Under the pieces are notes generated by a model that was given only the letters and a program-made list of their open reading frames with translations, made no database searches and was not told the DNA's origin. A stretch of DNA of 64,000 nucleotides from Salpingoeca rosetta (lineage: Eukaryota; Protista; Choanoflagellata), in contig JAWQFM010000005.1 of the NCBI GenBank assembly GCA_033442325.1, positions 1,336,329 through 1,400,328 of the forward strand, written 5' to 3'. Positions 26,237-39,795 of this stretch are shown here, in pieces (positions within the stretch are counted from its first letter, which is position 1; each line of letters starts with the position of its first letter). The translations under genes and the position numbers were made by a program.

Positions 26237-28876
26237 ATGGCATGTTCCTGGCGTGTGAAGCCGTTACGTTTTGCAACTCTCTCTCTCTCTCGTGAACCCC
26301 CCCCCCCCCACACACACACAATCTTACTCCATCTCACCACCATCACCGCCGTTTCTGCCATGTCGTCTGCACAGCTTGAGGCGACATTTGCGCAGCTGGA
26401 CAAGATCAAGCGCGATGTGACGGGCGAAGCAGATCGCATCTTCTCCCTCATGAAGGCCCTCAGTGACGGTGTGATTGAGCAGGCAGCCTACCTCAACTGC
26501 ATCAAGCATGGTGCCCCGCACAGCTATCACGGCGAGCGCAGCGGCAGCGCACGTGCCAGCCGCTTGAGTGCCGCCTCGCACGCGTCCAAGGGTGCGCGCC
26601 AGTCAACAGCAAAGTCCACAAAGAGCACGGGCAAGCGCAAGGGCCAGAGCTCGAAGCAACCTGTCGCCAATGGCAGGTGTGTATGATTGAAGTCATTGGT
26701 TTTCTGCGTTGGCTTGCCAACCCACCCGCTGTGTGACTTTTGTTTTGATGCAAGGCATTGGCTCTTCAGCCAAAGGTGTGGTTGATGGTTATGTTTGCAG
26801 ACAGACTCGTGTCTTCGCGATTCTGTGGTGAAGCGACATCATATGAGGGCGTGTCGTGGTGTTGGTGCTGGAGTTTCCTCAACACGCGCTATACTGTTCA
26901 CACTGCATGTTGGCGCTGTTGCAGGAACACGGTGCCAGTCGCTGTGCGTGGTTTGCGGTTGATGGTAGAAGACTGGATTCCGGGGCGTCCTGACTCGTTT
27001 ATGCACACCATCACCAGCCACCGCATCACATGCCGATCAGCCATCATCCACCTCGCTGTTCCCTTCTACGAGAAGGGGTGCGTATTTGCGTGTTATGTGG
27101 TTGCGTATGAGTATGCGTGTGCGTGGAAGTGCGTGGCTTGTGGATACGTTGGGCACCTTGTTGTGTTCTCAGTGTACATATACATGTACCTCATAACGCT
27201 TGTGTGTGTGTGTGTATACGGTTGATGTGCCTTCCGCCCATGCAATCTGACTTCTGTTGTCAGTGGCATGTTGAATCGTGCTCACAGAGTTCTGCCTTTG
27301 TTGGGTCTTTCACGATTTTGTTTGCCATGCAATTCCTGCCCACCACCACAGACACGCACGCCACACACTGCGCCCACTCGAGATCCGCGAAACCATCCAA
27401 TCCTACATGGACAACGTTCAGGTGCGGGCGTGTGGTGATGAGCGCTGCGGGCTGAGTGCCTCAGTTGAAATGTGTGGTGGTTGTCACGTGCTTTCACGCC
27501 GTGGTTTAGCAGCAATGGGATGCTATTTCCTGCGATGCCGGTGCACCCGTCGCATTGTGTCGCTGCTGGTCACATGCGAGCTTTGCTTGTGGCTTTGTAC
27601 AGGACATTTTGAACGAGCTCGACGATCGCGCGCGCACGTATTACGAGAAGGCTGTGCAGCTGCTGATTGATTTGCTCGCCCGCATCAACTCCATGTTTAT
27701 GGTCAGCACGCGGGCCGTGTTTGAGAACATCACGTTCAAGTGCGTGTCGCAGCACACGAATGCGATGCACGCCCTGCACGGCGACTCCCTGGCAAAGATG
27801 CGCAAGGCGTGGACGCAGCAGCACCAGCAGCACATGGCACGGCTTCGTCCACAGCTTGCGCACCCCGCGCTTGCTGATGACTTGCAGCAGTTGGACAAGG
27901 AAGAACACAAACGTATACAAGACGTTGATTCCGCCCTGCACGCGCTGACCGAGCAGTCTGTCGAGGCAGATGACGACGCGGTAAGGAGTTTGTGTTGTGT
28001 TGCGTGATGTGTTGTGCTGTGTTGTGTGTTGTGTGTTGTGTTATGTGTTGTGTTGTGTGTATGTGTGTGTGTGTGTGTGTGTTGTGCGCATTTGCTTGTG
28101 CGCGTGGTTGTCAACATCCACTTATCTCTCTCCGTGTGCGTGTGAGGTGTTGTCGAGTGTGTCGTGCACTTCTGTCCTCCTGTCAGTGCACTACGTCTCA
28201 CTTTCCTTTTCCTTGATCGTGTGTTGCAGCTGACGACGTTTGTGAATGATATGAACCAAATGGTGCACAATCTGTGCAACATCTTCGAGGACGTTCTCAA
28301 CCCCAACGAACTCTACTTGCCGTCACGAGGTCAGGCGATCTTTTTGAAGTCTTGTGATTGAAGGACACGTGTATTCGACTGCACACACGCACGCGAGTAC
28401 GCACAAACGCATGCACACGCGCACACACGCACGCGCACACACGCACACACATATACAATTATTCTGACGCTTGCAGTAGTTGCCTCGACTTATCCTCATG
28501 CATTCATACATTGCTTTCCTCGTTCACTGGTGCGCCGGATTTTTGTTTTTTTGTGACAGATCCGACTGCACCTCCTGAGGTTGCAGAGCAGCGGCAGAAG
28601 GGGCGTTTCCCGCTCATTGTGACGGGGCAGGTGATGCCTGGAAAGCACCGCCGCCTCACATCCGCGCACGGCGTGGGCATGCTCAGCACAAGCCTGCACC
28701 ACCGCGCAATAGAAGCGCGTGATGCCAGTGTGCAGGTGGCACGCGAGCACTTTGCAGCAGCAAGCAAGTCCCGCGAACAGACATGGGAAGACGTCAGGGC
28801 TGGGCTGCAACTTGAGCAGACAACGTGGTCTGACACCATCTCCCGCATTCGTTCCCTCACAGAGGACCAGGCGTGA
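18642..28876 (+). CDS. CCDC180: Coiled-coil domain-containing protein 180 (ciliary central-apparatus protein; DUF4455 + DUF4456), >20 exons
   Basis: N-terminal exons EVRALPDRVV, KILESDEEARELL, LMEIEAQRVEK|LRGVL...IAHVLPSEADRMVYAEAE|EINRTMLDN resemble DUF4455. There is an acidic central insert. The C-terminal HMARLRPQLAHPALADDLQQLDKEEHKR resembles DUF4456. Stop at 28874-28876. The start codon is uncertain. Confidence 0.8.
18835..18907. repeat. (CT)n microsatellite, intronic
   Basis: Perfect CT run. Confidence 0.95.
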
Positions 28877-32305: not shown

Positions 32306-35300
32306 TCACTGGAAGGAGACAACCTTGATGTCCGTGGAGGCTGTGAATGGAGCGCTTGTGGAGGCGTCGATAAACGGGTACGTGCCATCAATCGTTTGCG
32401 CAGTGAATGAGGACTCGCCACCAAAGAGAAGGCCAGTTGTGTTGGTGATGGGGACCATGGCAGCGCCGATCTGATAAGACGGCGGTGTCGGTGTGGCTGA
32501 GACGGACATGGCCTGAAGGTCCAGGCGATACGACACTCGCGTTGACGCGCCGCCCTTGCCGCTGACTCCGTTTGTCACAAGAAGCCAGCCGTTCTGCATC
32601 TCCATCACCGACGCAAATGCAACCGGATCGCGCAGCACGAGCCGAGGCGAGATGGTGGTCACCTTGGTGCCGTCAAAGACGAGGATGGATTGCAGGGCGC
32701 TGCCGTCCGAGAGGCCACCCACCAGCACAGCCTTGTTGAGGGCGTGCGAGTACGCCACAGCAATGCCGCTCGCCGCGGCTGGCAGAGACGTGGTGTTGAG
32801 GATGGTCCAGGTCGTGGCGTTGGTTGTGAGGACCTCGATGCTGGCCAGCGCCGTCCCGTTCGACATCATGCCTCCAATTGCATACAGCGCGCCGTTCACC
32901 ACAACCATGCTGTGCCCAAAGCGTGGCACCTGCAGCGATGGTCGGGCACTCCACTCCCCGCCAACGGCTGAGTAGCACTTGCCTGTCGCTGTGGGAGTGC
33001 CGCTGGCAAACGTGTCGATGCCACCGCACACATATGGCTGGTCACGGAACACGGTGGCAGCGGCATACGCCGTCGGGGTGGGCAGCATGCCCTGCGTCAC
33101 CCACGAGCCGGAGGAGAACACCTGCACCTCCGTTGTGGGCAGGCCAGAGCTGTTGAAGCCGCCAATGACCAGCGTGTCGTTGTGGTACATGAGCGCAGCC
33201 GCGCCCATGACTGGATGGCGGAGGGCACTTGGGATTGGCAGCGGGCCGGGCGGTGCGGGCATTTCCCCCACGTGTGACGCGTTCTTCCACAGGAGGTTTG
33301 CCTGAGCGGCCTGTGCACCAAGGTGCTGTGGGAGGTAGTGGTCGCAATACTCCGTCAGTGCAACAAGGCGGTCGGTGAGCGCTTCGCCCTGCAGATCAGA
33401 AGGGAGGTTGTGGCGTGACTGGTCAAGGACATTGGGGAGGGCGTCCAGCTGAACGCCAACAGGGTACACTTCGCCCTGTGGCAGCTCCAGCTCCGCCTGC
33501 CACGCGGCCGCGTTGTTGCTGGGGTCCTTCACGCGGGGTGGGCAGCGGGGCATGCACGTGGTGTAGTTGAATGTCATGGCCTGTCGCATCTCGGCCGTCA
33601 AGTTGGCTGAGGCCGATGCCGATGCTGAGGCGTCCAGGTCAAAGAAGAACAGCAGTGCTGCCTCGGCACCGCCGCTCAGCGACGTCTTGCCCTCAATCAT
33701 GGCGCGGACCATGGACGACTCCACAGCAGAGACCTGCACGCTCATGGAGCCAAACTGGATGGAGTTTGGCAGATACAAGCCGTACTTGTCCGTGAAGTTG
33801 GCGAAGACAGGCAGGTTGTCGTCATCCACGTCTCTTGGCAGCGCGCGCAGGTCATTCAAGAAATTGGTGGTGAAGCTGAGGCCCGACGCATAGTTGGGGC
33901 GGGAAAGCGTGTAGCGGGTGCAGTGACCAATGGCAATGGCCAGGTCTGCCGTGAAGCTGGCCGTTTGCTGCGTCACCATGGCCCATGTTCCTCCGAGGGA
34001 ATACTCAAACCCGAGCAGCGACGGCCAGAGGAACTTCTTCGATGGGATGACGCTGAAGAGGCCACGCAGCGTGTGCTGCAGCGCCGTGGTTCCGTGCACG
34101 TGCCAGGCCTTTTTGGCGTACTTGCACGTGTCCGAGCTCGCACCGCCTTCGCCATTGATGCCTGGTGGAAGTGTCCAGTCGTATGTGTCGCCAGGCACCT
34201 GCATGACGCCAGACCAGGGCGTGTTGCCGTCCATCTCAAACACGGGATAGCGGCTCCAGCCAGGGTCGGCACCTGTGCGCGACAGGGGGTCCCCGCGAAT
34301 CGTGTGATACCCACGCAGCATCATGTCCACCTGTTGAAACCGGAGGGCTGGCTTGCCTTGCGGCTGCTTGGGGGACACGGCAACCGGCCGGCTGCCACCA
34401 CGCCGAATCCGCCCACTTTGTTGCTGTTGTTCTTGTTGAGGATACGCATTGCTCTGGTGGTGCCTGCCGTGAAGGGGGTGCTTGTGTGCTGCTGACGCAG
34501 GCGGGGATGACAGGGATGACGAAGACCAAGGCAATCCATGCGATGACGATGATGCAGCACCGAAGGGAGCCTGGGACGATTGTGTCTCAATTGGTTGTGC
34601 TGGCAGGGACTGGGTTGCTGGGTGCAGGCCCACCTTGTCGCCCACGGTTGCACCAGGAGGTGCAACAACACCAAAAGCCGCACGCAGACGAAGTGGCAGC
34701 ATGCCATCCCCAAATGCATACAGCTCATCTGTGCTGGGCATGTACACGGTGGTGATGGCGGCGGCAAATTCGTCCCCACCTCGGTTGAAGGACGGCAGCA
34801 CAACCAGCTCGCGTGTAACCATGTTCCAACGCCACACATTTAAGCGACTGCCAGAGTGAGGATCTGTGGCAGCAATGACGACAGTGTCACTTGCACGGCC
34901 AGGGAACGGAGTACCGGACGCCCGACCCAAGTTCTTATGCCTGTCCATTGTGGGGGTGGTGGTGGTGGTGTGGGCGGAGGATGAAGTGGGCAGCGTGTGT
35001 GCCTGACCTGAACACATGGCCATGGGAAGGTACCCAACGACGCGCACCTCGTCGGTGGTCACGTTGTACTTCAGAATGGCCGAGGAGCACGAGCCATCTG
35101 GGCGGCGCCCGCCAAACAGGAAGACGCTTCCGGAACCGTCTGCCACAGCTGTTGCATTGGCCAGGCACAGCAGTGGTGTTGTATGCGGCTGACGCTGCCA
35201 CGAGGGCGAGCTCGCACTTGTGTCAAGGTGGTACGCACGACATGCCGTCTGCGTTGACGCACCAGCCAGCATACCCACAGCCACAATCTTGCCGCTTGCG

Positions 35301-38300
35301 GCGTCCAGCGCGGCCGCGGCGTTGTTCACGGAATCAGGGAGGGAGGGCCCCGAGACCCAAATGCCAGTCGTTGTGTTGTAGATGGCCGACTGTGTCTTTG
35401 ACGTGGAGCCAGCCGGAACGTTGCACACGGACCAGAGCGCGCTGTTGGGCGCGAGCACAAGAGATGACGCGTTGGTGATAGGGGCTGGGCTCACGTGCTG
35501 CCACTGCGGCGCCTGCACGCCCTTGACCATGGGCGGCCGATACAGCAGGGTGACGTCGGACACGGTGCCAAGCCAGCCGCCGGCAACAACAACCGCAGAC
35601 TCGTTGACAAGCACGGCGCGCGAGTATGTGGCGCCCACGGGTAGCATGTTGGGCGCATACTGCCACGTCGGCTGTCGCCTGGCTGCCGAGCAGCCGGGCG
35701 TATGGGCACAGTACGTTCCGTCCAGCATGACGGATCGGATGAGCTCGGCGGTCTGGTTCAGGAGGGCGTGGCTGATGGTGGGGAAGTACGCGGGTGTCAC
35801 CACCTCGGTAATGGGGCGCACACGCGTGGCGATTGGGGACACGTGGCCGCCGTCGCTGTCAAAGATGTTATCAAACCCGGTCGTGTTGATGGTGACGTTG
35901 TTGGTGAGGGGCGGACAGAGCGGCACGCAGGTGGTGCGGTTGGAGCTGGTGTAGCGCACGAGATCAGCGTTGGCGCTCACGTGCGCCTGCGCGTCCTCGC
36001 TGTGGGAGCCGCCCCAGAAGAAGAGGGTTGAGTGCGAGCTTGAGTAGCCAAAGTCGACGTTGGCCCGCAGGGCAGCGTGGAAGTGCGACTCTGTCATCTC
36101 GAAGGACTGGGAGAAGCGCGCGCCAAACGAGGCAGAGCTCACATAGGCGTCGCCAAAGTGCTGCAGAATGCTCACGGCAAGGGCGCGGGCATTGGTGGTG
36201 TTTCCCTCCTTGATCTGCTGCACCAGCAGGTTCACAGCCGCCTTGAAGTCGGGCGACACAGGCGGCGTCAACAGGGAGTCAGGGCCGTCGCTCTTCTTTG
36301 TGTGGACTCCATCGGCGTTGACATTGCGGCTGCTCCGGCTGCTGCGGCTGCTGCGGCTGTTGCGGGGGGCCTCGTTTGGGTCCGTGCTGGCGAGTGGCGT
36401 CACAACAACGCCTTCTTCGCCTGGGCGGGCCTCAATGTAGTTAATGTCAAACAGCTCGCATCGGCCAGAGGCAAAGGCGGTGGTGTGGCGGAAGGTGGTG
36501 GAGGCAGAGGCAGACAAGCCCGCCTCAAAGTTGGCGCTGAAGGCAAAGTCCAGCAGGCCCGGGAAGCCGAAGAAAAGCTCAGCACTCATCCAGGCGCTGG
36601 CTGCAACCTGGGCATCCACTTCGTCCTGGATGAGACCCGTCTCTGTTTGGAAGGAGCAGCGGCGCAGCGAGCGCACGTCCAAGGCGTTGGGCACGCTCTG
36701 GTTGTCGTGTGTTTTGTGAAGCCAGAAGCAGCTCTTGCAGTCTGGCTCAAACACGCGCGCTGGCACCACCTTGCCCGTCACCGTGGACACGCCCATCCCA
36801 GGCAACGATGCACCGGGATGAAGCGGTGGCGATGCAGCACCAGCACTGGTCACGCGGGCTTGCTTTGAGGTCTGGGAGCTGGTGGAGCCAGCGCTGGTGC
36901 GAGGTGCCCTGCTGTTGTTGCTGCTGCTGCTGCTGTCACTGCTACTGCTAGCGCTGTTGGCACTGGTGCCGCTGGCGGTGTTGCTGTTGGCGCCAAAGGT
37001 AGTAGGAACTGCGGTTTGCGAGCACTGGATTGTTGCGCCTGGCGCAATGGTGTATGTCTGCACGCTGGAGACGACGCCCTTGCATTGGCTGTCCTTGCAG
37101 CCGCCAGCAACGACAACGTCCACACCTCCGGGTGCACTCACCGAGGGCATGGTGACTGCCGGGGCAAACGCGGTGCCCTCGGGAAGGCCGCAGCCAGGGA
37201 TCCATTCCGCAGTCGCTCCCTTGACAGGGAGCTGCAGGATGCGCACGTCACTGAGGCTGGCCACGGCGTTCGTGTCTGGTGAGCGGGCTGCGAGGCCAGT
37301 TGCATCGCGGCCACCCATGATGAGGATGTCGTTGCCCACAACGACGGCGGCGTGCCCCATGCGTGGAGTGTCAGCGCCTCCCATGGGCGGGACATGGGCG
37401 TCGCTCCACAGGTCTGTGTCCACGTTGTACAACAGCACCTTTGCATTTAGCGTGCCGTCCGGCAGCACGCCGCCGACGACGTATACGAGCGAGTCGTTCA
37501 CCACCGTGCACGACATGCCGGACAGGGTGAGGGGCATGGGCTGAACTGTGGACCACGAGTCGGTTTCCGGGTCATACACCTCCGTCACAGGCGTGCCACC
37601 GCCAGTAACATGCAGCGCCCCGCAGGCGACAAACGTGCAGTGCAACTGGCGGCGCGTCTGCATGGGCTCCACGTTGATCCACTCGTTCTTCTGGGGCGAG
37701 AAGGAGATGACGGTGGTGCGGCCACTGGTGTTGGTGAAGGGCGGCCCGGCGCCACCGGTGACATACACGCGATCGTTGAGCACGGCGGCGGAGGCGTTGG
37801 CCACGTTGGCGCGCGGGTCCTGCGAGAGCAGCGTCCATGGCGCCACCCCCTGCAATGCAGCGGATGGGTCCTGGGCGGCTTTGGTTGGGGTTGGCGCCGT
37901 TTTTGGCGGCATGGCTGCGGGGACGTAGCGCTGCACGGCGGGCACATCGGGCAGGGACGCTTGGCTCGCTGTTCCACTGAAGAACAGCACGGCGTTGGCG
38001 TTGGCGTTGGCGTTGGCGGTGGAGATGGAGACGTTGGCAAACACGGCAGCATGGCCTGCCATGGGCTGGAAGGACGTGATGCCCGTGTCTGTGGTGGTCC
38101 AGCGAGCAGAGCGTGGGGGGAGCTTGGGGCAGCCACCCGCACGCGTCTTGCAGAAGTCATTGTTGAGGAAGCGCTGGTAGAGCTGTGCGCGCGTGCCGAT
38201 AGCTGGGTCGTTTGGGAAGAAGGCTGGCGTGAGGACGGCGGTGAGGTTCTGCAGGGTGTATGCGACAACGCCCGGGTCCTTCTCGACAGCGAGAGCCCAC

Positions 38301-39395
38301 GCGTTTGCGCCGCGCGTGAGCTGACCGTGGACGGGCGGGAAGGGGATGTAACTTGTCTGCACGGAGATTTTGCTGGAGTTGAAGGCCTCCTGTTCGTTCC
38401 AGCCAGGGGTGCGGTTGTTGCAGAGCACGTCGTCACCAATGGAGCAGATGTGGTTGAGGGTGGCTGAGGAGTGCAGGTCGCCCGACGTCTTGCGGAGATG
38501 CTCGAAGCTTTCCTGGCTGAATGCGGTTACGCGGACCGACTTGCCGCCAAACTCAGCGTCGGCAACAACGGAGTCGCCGTAGGCGTTGGCAAACTGCAGC
38601 ATGTCGTTAAGCTTATCGTTGTACTCGCTCTCGTCGCGCGGGAGCAGCTCGGCCACGTTGGACTTGAAGCCCGCGGTGAGCACGGCGCTGTTGTCGAACG
38701 TGTTGCGCTGAACATGATAGCTTGTGCAGGCAATGCTGTGGCGAACGACCACGTTGTTCTTGTTGACCGTGAGCGAGTTGACGGCAGAGAACCAGTGCGT
38801 CTCTGAGGATGAGTGGAAGAGGCCGTGGTGCTCCGAGTGCGTGTACGCGTTCACCACAGACTTGTAGTCAAACCAGTCGTGCATGGCCTTGACTGAATCC
38901 GTGAGTCGACACTGTGTGAGTGCGAAGGGGGCGGGCGGGGAAGGTGAGACAAGAGTTGTCGTTTGGGTGCTGGGCATTCAGACATTTATAGAGATGCAGA
39001 CACAGATACAAACACACACAAAATACAAACACACACGCATACACACACGCATACACACACGCATACACACACACATACACGCATACACACATACACACAT
39101 ACACGCATACACACATACACACATACACGCATACACACACATACACACACATGCACGCATACACACACATACACACATGCACACATGCACGCACATGCAC
39201 ACATCAGGACGCAAACAGCACACCTTGAAGTTTGGGAGGTAGGTCCAGCCATCGGGAACGGCAACTGTGCCTTCATAGTGCTGGCCTTGTTCGAAGGAAG
39301 ACAGGTTGAAGACGGCGCTACTCATGAACCCAGGCGTGTTGCACCGTGACGAAGAGCATTGCGGATCGCCATCAATAGATGACTGCAGGGAGATG

Positions 39396-39431
<36 letters not shown>

Positions 39432-39795
39432 ACGGAGTCGTAGCGTATGGGATCATCGCTACAAGTCATTGTGGAACTGCTTCAGCACAGCACCACGGAG
39501 AATCACAGGAACGCTCAACAACAACCCAGCATTCACTCTTGCTTGCAGGCAACCTCGAACAGCCAGCCAAAACGTTTTGGTGGTGCATTCGTTCCATATT
39601 GGGTGGTGCCATTTTGTTGTGTCACCCATGCTAACACAGCATTTGTGACGCGCTTCTTGGGGACTGACATGAATAACTGACCTGGAAAGTGAGCACGCCT
39701 TTGCCAACGATGTCCACGTTGTTTGGGGGCGACAGGGCATGACCTTCAGTGCCAAGGAGGGCGAGGACGAGCACAGCGGCAAAAAGGCCGTGCAT
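32306..39795 (-). CDS. Secreted ~2290-aa protein with three tandem (MACPF/perforin-like + Kelch beta-propeller) modules
   Basis: Exons 39795-39682 (signal peptide MHGLFAAVLVLALLGTEGHA), 39382-39224 and 38911-32306 join through phase-0 GT-AG introns. There are three MACPF signature-like motifs (YGDSVVADAEFGG, FGDAYVSSASFGA, YGLYLPNSIQFGS), each preceded by LxxxFxxxVxxL. Module 3 has the typical MACPF start RGYHTIRGDPL...DPG...PVF. Each MACPF is followed by Kelch repeats (VYVTGG, EVYDPETDSW, YVVGG, LYAIGG). Many N-glycosylation sequons. Confidence 0.85.

Follow-up and report, generated by a model that had tools for sequence, protein, structure and literature searches.

Pores formed by MACPF proteins (perforin, MPEG1, and complement) play a central part in the immunity of animals, and the origin of ordered hetero-oligomeric assemblies like the complement membrane attack complex (MAC) is an open question. 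The gene PTSG_01870 of the choanoflagellate Salpingoeca rosetta, which lies in a 64,000-nucleotide stretch of contig JAWQFM010000005.1 (the window, to whose first letter the coordinates of the gene and its neighbors refer), bears on this question: does its product, a predicted chain with three MACPF domains, carry one pore-forming subunit three times over, or three different subunits of one machine? On balance, we lean towards the view that choanoflagellates and other marine protists have a conserved MACPF system with three subunits, a complement-like hetero-oligomeric pore former, and that PTSG_01870 represents one version of it in which the subunits are covalently joined.

Gene and module architecture of PTSG_01870

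PTSG_01870 extends from 39795 to 32306 on the minus strand, on which all features of the gene lie, and has three exons and a product of 2,292 aa. A minus-strand open reading frame (ORF) of 2,223 codons (38977-32306) is joined via GT..AG introns to two short exons upstream, and the spliced product is a 100% match of the S. rosetta database protein PTSG_01870 (2,292 aa), which is named "hypothetical protein PTSG_01870 [Salpingoeca rosetta]" or "MACPF domain-containing protein" with nothing further annotated. Exon 1 (39682..39795, with the ATG at 39795) encodes the signal peptide and the start of MACPF module 1, exon 2 (39224..39382, 53 codons) the N-terminal part of MACPF1, and exon 3 (32306..38911, 2,201 codons and a stop codon at 32306-32308) the remainder of the protein; the exon 2 product can be aligned to the N-terminal segments of the other two MACPF domains. 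Intron 1 (39383..39681) has 299 nt and intron 2 (38912..39223) 312 nt, the latter consisting nearly throughout of imperfect (TG)n/(TGTGTA)n microsatellite repeats. The gene is intact, and the 6.6-kb exon 3 is stop-free across all three modules. Of the sequencing runs listed as containing this region, none is recorded as RNA.

The N-terminus MHGLFAAVLVLALLGTEGHA is the sole stretch in the whole protein with a 19-residue Kyte-Doolittle mean above 1.6. Because this stretch alone exceeds that value, a signal peptide (aa 1-20; 39795-39736), as recognized by inspection of hydrophobicity, is likely, and the same scan revealed no membrane anchor; the chain stops right after the last strand of the third propeller. 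Because it lacks an anchor and contains 30 N-x-S/T sequons for N-glycosylation and 35 cysteines, the product fits a secreted or secretory protein. Behind the signal peptide, a MACPF domain followed by a six-bladed Kelch propeller occurs three times, giving modules M1-K1 (aa 1-721), M2-K2 (aa 791-1520), and M3-K3 (aa 1611-2292), which are separated by Ser/Gln-rich linkers. Linker 1 (aa 722-790; 36815..37021) is Ser-rich and of low complexity and contains the motif RAPR, and linker 2 (aa 1521-1610; 34355..34624) is Ser/Gln/His-rich and contains RIRR at aa 1592-1595. Pairwise identity between the three modules is only 18-25%.

Against the Pfam MACPF family (PF01823, cut-off 21.5 bits), the whole protein scored 84.1 bits over three stretches; scored one by one, the exon-3 part of MACPF1 (aa 92-359; 38108..38911) reached 43.7 bits, MACPF2 (aa 791-1171; 35672..36814), which includes a disordered insert of ~60 aa, 16.5 bits, and MACPF3 (aa 1611-1963; 33296..34354) 35.1 bits. 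An AlphaFold2 model of M1-K1, computed from a 136-row alignment of family modules, had a predicted local distance difference test (pLDDT) score of 83 and a predicted template modeling (pTM) score of 0.78. The model of M2-K2 reached a pLDDT of 76, and the low-complexity insert of M2 came out disordered in it; for a longer construct, from M2 through K2 and the linker to M3, only about 8 alignment rows covered M2. Comparing folds with VIA-align against 48,161 PDB representatives, residues 5-336 of the M1 model matched the MACPF domain of TgPLP1 (Z 22.6, root-mean-square deviation 2.9, 250 residues aligned), the Mp2Ba1 prepore (Z 22.6), the MPEG1 prepore (Z 21.8), and C9 (Z 18.1), and the M1 model also matched GNIP1Aa and Plu-MACPF; residues 1-372 of the M2 model matched the MPEG1 prepore (Z 23.5). 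In both models, DSSP assigned the canonical succession of b1, helical cluster, b2, helix-turn-helix, b3, helical cluster, and b4, and the models thus predict that M1 and M2 adopt the MACPF fold, i.e. a bent four-stranded beta-sheet with two helical clusters. A Foldseek search of the PDB with the two-domain model returned Kelch matches only, and the MACPF matches emerged with the wide VIA-align comparison. Among orthologue profiles, that of M2 matched perforin-1 (E 1.7e-6), and that of M3 matched TgPLP1 (E 3.9e-6) and also perforin-1 and C9; aligned with hhalign, the M3 and M2 profiles matched with 99.85% probability over 321 columns.

The MACPF signature (Y/W-G-T/S-H-F/Y-x6-G-G) is represented by YGDSVVADAEFGG in M1 (38543-38581), in which G...GG is kept, and by FGDAYVSSASFGA in M2 (36119-36157) and YGLYLPNSIQFGS in M3 (33746-33784), in both of which the last glycine is replaced. 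Across the 136 aligned modules, the only invariant columns are two glycines, G183 and G193 of the first sequence; judged by spacing alone, they would match the first glycine of the M1 signature and the leading glycine of its closing pair. A recent PDB entry pair, 9xda/9xdb ('MAC/Perforin domain containing protein', 1,120 aa, 20 chains), was matched weakly by the profiles of M2 (E 0.045) and M3 (E 0.0035) and may serve as a large-MACPF comparator.

All three Kelch propellers were recognized by Pfam, for which the cut-offs are family-specific: the six-bladed propeller 1 (aa 360-721; 37022..38107) scored 80.6 bits, propeller 2 (aa 1172-1520; 34625..35671), the most diverged of the three, 30.8 bits with Kelch_4, and propeller 3 (aa 1964-2292; 32309..33295) 64.3 bits with Kelch_1. 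Residues 338-682 of the M1-K1 model form a six-bladed Kelch propeller that VIA-align matched to KLHL17 (Z 30.6, root-mean-square deviation 1.8, 254/287 residues aligned) and to YjhT/NanM (Z 28.8), the latter match being no better than those to intracellular KLHL Kelch domains, and the K2 model matched Kelch propellers with Z 21-23. The Kelch fold is thus predicted by models for K1 and K2, and K3 is assigned from its Pfam profile.

Much of the initial annotation of this locus, which was made from the DNA alone, agrees with these data. It had placed the gene at 32306-39795, which are the exact ends of the coding sequence, without mentioning the two introns, and its domain borders agree with ours to within a few tens of bases. 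The signal peptide that it proposed is likely on the grounds given above; the three MACPF-like domains are recovered by Pfam in all three cases, by fold models for M1 and M2 (Z 22-23), and by profiles for M3; the Kelch propeller that it saw behind each of them is supported by Pfam families and by the K1 and K2 models; the Ser/Gln-rich linkers are evident in the sequence; and the bacterivorous animal relative that it supposed as the source is S. rosetta. The failure of modules to model as MACPF domains, which it had named as fatal to its proposal, was not observed for M1 and M2 and is unlikely for M3.

Module-specific hairpins, rotated order, and split genes

We compared the putative transmembrane hairpin regions TMH1 and TMH2 module by module, taking their borders from two models for M1 and M2 and from alignment for M3, and measuring amphipathicity as the beta-amphipathic moment relative to shuffled sequences (z). 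In M1, TMH1 (38756..38905) is polar, His-rich, and not beta-amphipathic, and TMH2 (38372..38515) is polar and not amphipathic and has a pair of cysteines that is conserved in orthologues of type A, the S. rosetta type; for both hairpins, z is below or near 0 across orthologues. In M2, both hairpins are strongly beta-amphipathic, TMH1 (36488..36628) with an FGFPG tip and TMH2 (35945..36091) with an aromatic FFWGG tip, and in most orthologues both show the alternating pattern, an aromatic tip, and z of 2-4. In M3, TMH1 (33950..34120) is not clearly amphipathic and carries a conserved LPSKKWGWP-type motif, and TMH2 (33578..33718) is amphipathic, its LLFFF tip leading into a strand of alternating (A-S)n, and has z of about 1-2.7 across orthologues. 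By this measure, amphipathic hairpins are lacking in M1, occur in both positions in M2, and are confined to TMH2 in M3, and this module-specific pattern is also present in a second subfamily (B).

A maximum-likelihood tree built from 51 MACPF domains (paired values are branch supports as given) places each S. rosetta module with the modules in the same position of its closest relatives (M1, 100/100; M2, 100/99; M3, 100/99), and in a tree of the Kelch domains the propellers are likewise position-specific (K1, 94/88; K2, 99/99; K3, 100/97). Because the module clades are position-specific, the triplication is older than the divergence of S. rosetta and S. kvevrii, with each position kept since. 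The Kelch tree left the relations between subfamilies A and B without resolution. Proteins of subfamily B (the Bicosta-like P0178/P0179, P0026, and P0032) also have three modules behind a signal peptide (m1 to m3), and in the MACPF tree these are not colinear with those of subfamily A: A-M1 is sister to B-m2 (99/96), and A-M3 groups with B-m1. In approximately unbiased (AU) tests, the pairing of A-M2 with B-m3 was not rejected (p 0.32), and the colinear pairings of A-M1 with B-m1 (p 0.0006) and of A-M2 with B-m2 (p 0.005) were. The hairpins follow the same pairings. Specifically, those of B-m2 are polar and His-rich as in M1; B-m1 is amphipathic in TMH2 only and has an LLIFFG tip as in M3; and TMH1 of B-m3 is amphipathic in most members, with P0179 having a GFPFLFD motif that is shared with some A-M2 orthologues. 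Because tree pairings and hairpin chemistry agree, we suggest that the order in subfamily B is M3-M1-M2, a rotation of the S. rosetta order.

A third arrangement, which probably accounts for the rotation, was found in three metagenomic eukaryote contig sets from six samples, in which two genes, X and Y, lie head-to-head on opposite strands (L005, 1-13396; L010, 1-12932; L013, 1-6351; GC-rich, 63-74%). Gene X encodes an M3-like MACPF domain and a Kelch propeller (709-723 aa), and gene Y, on the strand opposite X, an M1-like MACPF domain, a Kelch propeller, an M2-like MACPF domain, and a Kelch propeller. The distance between the ATGs of X and Y is 155 bp in L005 and 221 bp in L010, and in these two sets both products have signal-peptide-like N-termini; both L013 ORFs begin without one. 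Because X is M3-like and Y is M1-like plus M2-like, the S. rosetta order corresponds to Y+X and the subfamily B order to X+Y. Because the genes are separate in one lineage and fused both ways elsewhere, a relation of the Rosetta-stone type, the products of X and Y would be expected to act together, and a ring with M1, M2, and M3 in repeating order would be the simplest arrangement that is indifferent to the order of fusion. In a profile search, the relatives of gene X were metagenome proteins only. An intron in gene Y of L005 is suggested by its putative signal-peptide ATG, which does not share the frame of the main ORF and has a donor-like GTGAGC site behind it. The neighbors in L010 include a Saf4/Yju2 splicing factor and a sulfatase. 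The idea that P0033 and P0035 are a single gene broken by gene calling was ruled out by their opposite strands.

The architecture is not confined to S. rosetta. A profile of the three MACPF domains, searched against 1.84 billion representatives, found 169 relatives, several of which have 1,946-2,520 aa and three MACPF stretches; a homologue search with whole modules was dominated by Kelch-only proteins, and a shape search of the ESM Atlas revealed no large cluster with the MACPF+Kelch shape. By our own profiles a Kelch region follows each MACPF in all three-MACPF relatives but P0026, and Pfam recovers three MACPF domains plus Kelch in three relatives, P0026 among them. Among the named members, Salpingoeca kvevrii, S. 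urceolata, Diaphanoeca grandis, and a Bicosta minor cluster are choanoflagellates and together cover both orders; one further entry, P0026, carries a diplonemid label, the rest come from marine or other metagenome contigs, and more distant single-module relatives from Emiliania huxleyi and a picozoan. Single ORFs spanning all three modules are present in the S. kvevrii transcriptome and, with 2,044-2,520 aa, in metagenomes. P0026 (EukProt EP01062), a complete subfamily-B protein with three MACPF-Kelch modules, is filed under the transcriptome of the diplonemid Namystynia karyoxenos, which could be due to horizontal transfer, a wider distribution, or choanoflagellate or prey contamination. The sole other MACPF gene found in the S. 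rosetta genome (L002, G000:C16:682840-686235) is a 743-aa ORF with a hydrophobic N-terminus, one MACPF domain (41.6 bits), and no Kelch, and is adjoined by a divergent ORF. It may be the gene with MACPF and 'ribosomal protein S2 site' matches that appears in the available part of the 2013 expression and differential-expression tables (PMC4054682 supplement).

Close to PTSG_01870, Pfam assigns a SUEL-type lectin domain, which binds D-galactoside/L-rhamnose, to the product of the convergent neighbor PTSG_01869 (30542-31519, plus strand; 64.2 bits). The next gene, PTSG_01868, is a pentaxin according to the 2013 table (PMC4054682 supplement) and was not located among the ORFs scanned. There may be a small cluster of secreted lectin/immune-type genes beside the MACPF gene. 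Ordinary neighbors are an exon-sized ORF with a DUF4456 match (27555-28007, plus strand; 119 bits) and a mitochondrial carrier gene (47113-48078, minus strand; 227.8 bits), which is PTSG_01874 by the same table.

A candidate three-subunit pore former and its alternatives

The initial annotation had proposed that several subunits of a pore former sit on one chain. To this proposal the position-specific clades, the module-specific hairpin chemistry, the rotated order, and the split gene pairs add independent, though indirect, comparative support; they suggest that the three module types act together as subunits of one, presumably pore-forming, machine, and the rest of the proposal is interpretation. 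In our working model, the protein would enter the secretory pathway via its signal peptide and either leave the cell or reach a lumen. The Kelch propellers, which would be placed like the C2 domain of perforin or domain 4 of cholesterol-dependent cytolysins (CDCs), would bind the target surface, and the MACPF domains of one or several chains would pack laterally into a ring in the repeating order M1-M2-M3. M2 with both hairpins and M3 with its second hairpin would then unfurl into a membrane-spanning beta-barrel, and M1, with polar His-rich hairpins, may be a non-inserting or partly inserting initiator and possibly a pH sensor, a division of labor that would resemble that between C6, C7, C8, and C9 of the MAC. 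The likely use would be antibacterial, for prey killing in or near the food vacuole or for defense. We infer ring assembly, membrane insertion, what M1 and the propellers do, which target is bound, and how the organism uses the system from knowledge of the family and from the comparative pattern. A more specific version, which we put forward only tentatively, is that the three subunits are obligatorily different and in fixed cyclic order, that the His-rich, non-inserting M1 is an acid-triggered initiator in the food vacuole, and that the three distinct Kelch propellers read the prey surface. The resulting MAC-like pore would have evolved outside animals, in choanoflagellates and other marine protists, with its subunits either joined in a single chain, in one rotation or the other, or divided between two genes of a bidirectional pair.

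Several points weigh against our reading. The function of PTSG_01870 as a pore former is deduced from sequence, models, and comparison, and some MACPF proteins, e.g. astrotactins, Torso-like, and BRINPs, are non-lytic. At the level of the domains, MACPF2 alone scores under the PF01823 cut-off, the last glycine of the signature is an alanine in M2 and a serine in M3, and MACPF3 is probably a MACPF domain on the strength of sequence profiles, the fold models being those of M1 and M2. At the level of the comparison, the clades were named after inspection of the tree, the grouping of A-M3 with B-m1 has moderate support (90/73), the colinear pairing of A-M3 with B-m3 was only borderline rejected (p 0.066), and scoring of gene X with group hidden Markov models cannot separate M3-like from M2-like. 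Moreover, the amphipathicity measure was used without a positive control from proven pore formers, and a complex prediction for MACPF1 and MACPF2 gave 0.17 at a mark of 0.34, a result that speaks neither for nor against binding.

A variant of the hetero-oligomer reading is that PTSG_01870 is a polyprotein, in which a furin/kexin-type convertase would cut the linkers in the secretory pathway and the three released MACPF-Kelch subunits would co-assemble. Candidate sites are RAPR in linker 1 and RIRR in linker 2, basic Rx[KR]R or RxxR clusters also occur in linkers of P0022, P0024, P0026, P0035, and P0179, and X and Y are separate polypeptides in other organisms; however, the basic motifs are absent from P0023, P0032, and some linkers, RxxR is frequent by chance in basic low-complexity sequence, and cleavage is here read from linker motifs. 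We consider this variant possible but doubtful.

A non-lytic protein would be a greater departure from our reading. In this scenario, PTSG_01870 would be an extracellular adhesion, matrix, or signaling component in the manner of astrotactins, BRINPs, or Torso-like, with the Kelch propellers making protein-protein contacts, e.g. in the theca or the rosette matrix. S. rosetta secretes many multidomain extracellular matrix proteins, the adjoining genes are of the lectin type, and M1 lacks amphipathic hairpins, all of which would suit such a role. On the other hand, classic alternating hairpins with aromatic tips are kept in M2 and M3 of all orthologues, and the nearest folds are those of the pore formers TgPLP1, Mp2Ba1, and MPEG1. 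Because selection for the M2 and M3 hairpins is otherwise hard to explain, we favor membrane insertion and regard a non-lytic role as unlikely.

Simple redundancy, in which three equivalent MACPF domains raise the local concentration and reduce the number of chains per pore with no specialization or fixed order, has been voiced in similar form for perforin-like proteins (PLPs) of Theileria and Babesia (PMC7522308). Here, it is confronted with modules that are so dissimilar to each other and yet each conserved by position across species, with a hairpin chemistry that is module-specific, and with rotated and split arrangements that retain all three types together, making it improbable. Finally, an annotation or assembly artefact in which three adjacent genes were misread as one, for which only the unusual length speaks, is very improbable given the stop-free exon 3 across all modules and the S. 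kvevrii transcriptome ORF and metagenomic ORFs that also span three modules.

If our reading is true, the rings would have a MACPF count divisible by three, with M2 and M3 inserting and M1 not. Three specialized MACPF subunits would have their stoichiometry fixed covalently, and the natural rotated and split versions allow comparison; because S. rosetta is transfectable and editable, the prediction is directly testable. Studying it could, in addition, reveal the way in which a bacterivore kills prey and what Kelch propellers recognize outside the cell.

Comparison with known systems

We found no paper describing the MACPF-Kelch combination or naming PTSG_01870, and none linking MACPF to choanoflagellates in substance. 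The statement in the initial annotation that no characterized protein with this architecture was known is to be qualified in that the domain content was tabulated in 2013, recurs in choanoflagellates, and has counterparts in triple-MACPF chains predicted elsewhere. Specifically, in the part of the 2013 genome paper's supplement that is available (PMC4054682), the InterPro table already lists MACPF and Kelch for PTSG_01870, the Blast2GO label is "kelch-like protein 12", and an antisense row for the gene in the expression tables has zero reads. In Theileria annulata and Babesia bovis, the proteins TA18285 and BBOV_III000410, respectively, are predicted to have three MACPF domains on one chain, and the authors noted that fewer monomers might be needed per pore (PMC7522308). 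Because these chains were already predicted, a multi-MACPF chain as such is not new; what is new is the Kelch pairing, the presence of three module types that are each conserved and differ in their chemistry, and the existence of relatives with a rotated order or with split genes. The piroplasm proteins resemble PTSG_01870 in that three MACPF domains lie on one secreted, uncharacterized chain and raise the same question of chains per pore, but no module specialization, rotation, or split genes are reported for them (PMC7522308). By description, they are also set apart by an apicomplexan beta-rich C-terminal domain and the lack of Kelch.

A pairing of MACPF with a propeller is shared with PV2 of Pomacea, a two-chain toxin in which the MACPF subunit is paired with a tachylectin-like, beta-propeller-type lectin as the targeting part; in contrast, the propeller of PTSG_01870 is of the Kelch type, fused C-terminally, and present three times, and sugar binding by it is putative. 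MPEG1/perforin-2, the phagosomal, acid-triggered bactericidal pore former of phagocytes, ranks first or close to first among the structural matches of both MACPF1 and MACPF2, and its mode of action would fit a bacterivore and a His-rich M1. It differs from PTSG_01870, which has no anchor and three distinct MACPF domains, in being a single-MACPF homo-oligomer with a P2 domain and an anchor. The short and long CDC-like (CDCL) proteins of Bacteroidota, related pore-forming subunits encoded side by side, follow an initiator-plus-polymerizer logic, and their complement-like division into two roles is what we propose here; unlike PTSG_01870, they are bacterial, belong to the CDC-like branch, and have neither propellers nor a single-chain fusion.

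A further parallel in logic is the MAC (C6, C7, C8alpha/beta, and C9). In contrast to the MAC proteins, the subunits of the PTSG_01870 system are covalently chained, or encoded by two neighboring genes in relatives, and carry Kelch propellers rather than TSP, LDLa, and EGF domains; the system has no C5b-type platform and belongs to a separate lineage without shown orthology. Both have diverged MACPF domains with unequal hairpins, the M3 profile and the M1 fold both match C9, and, if assembly proceeds as we propose, both would share a fixed subunit order and a division between inserting and initiating subunits.

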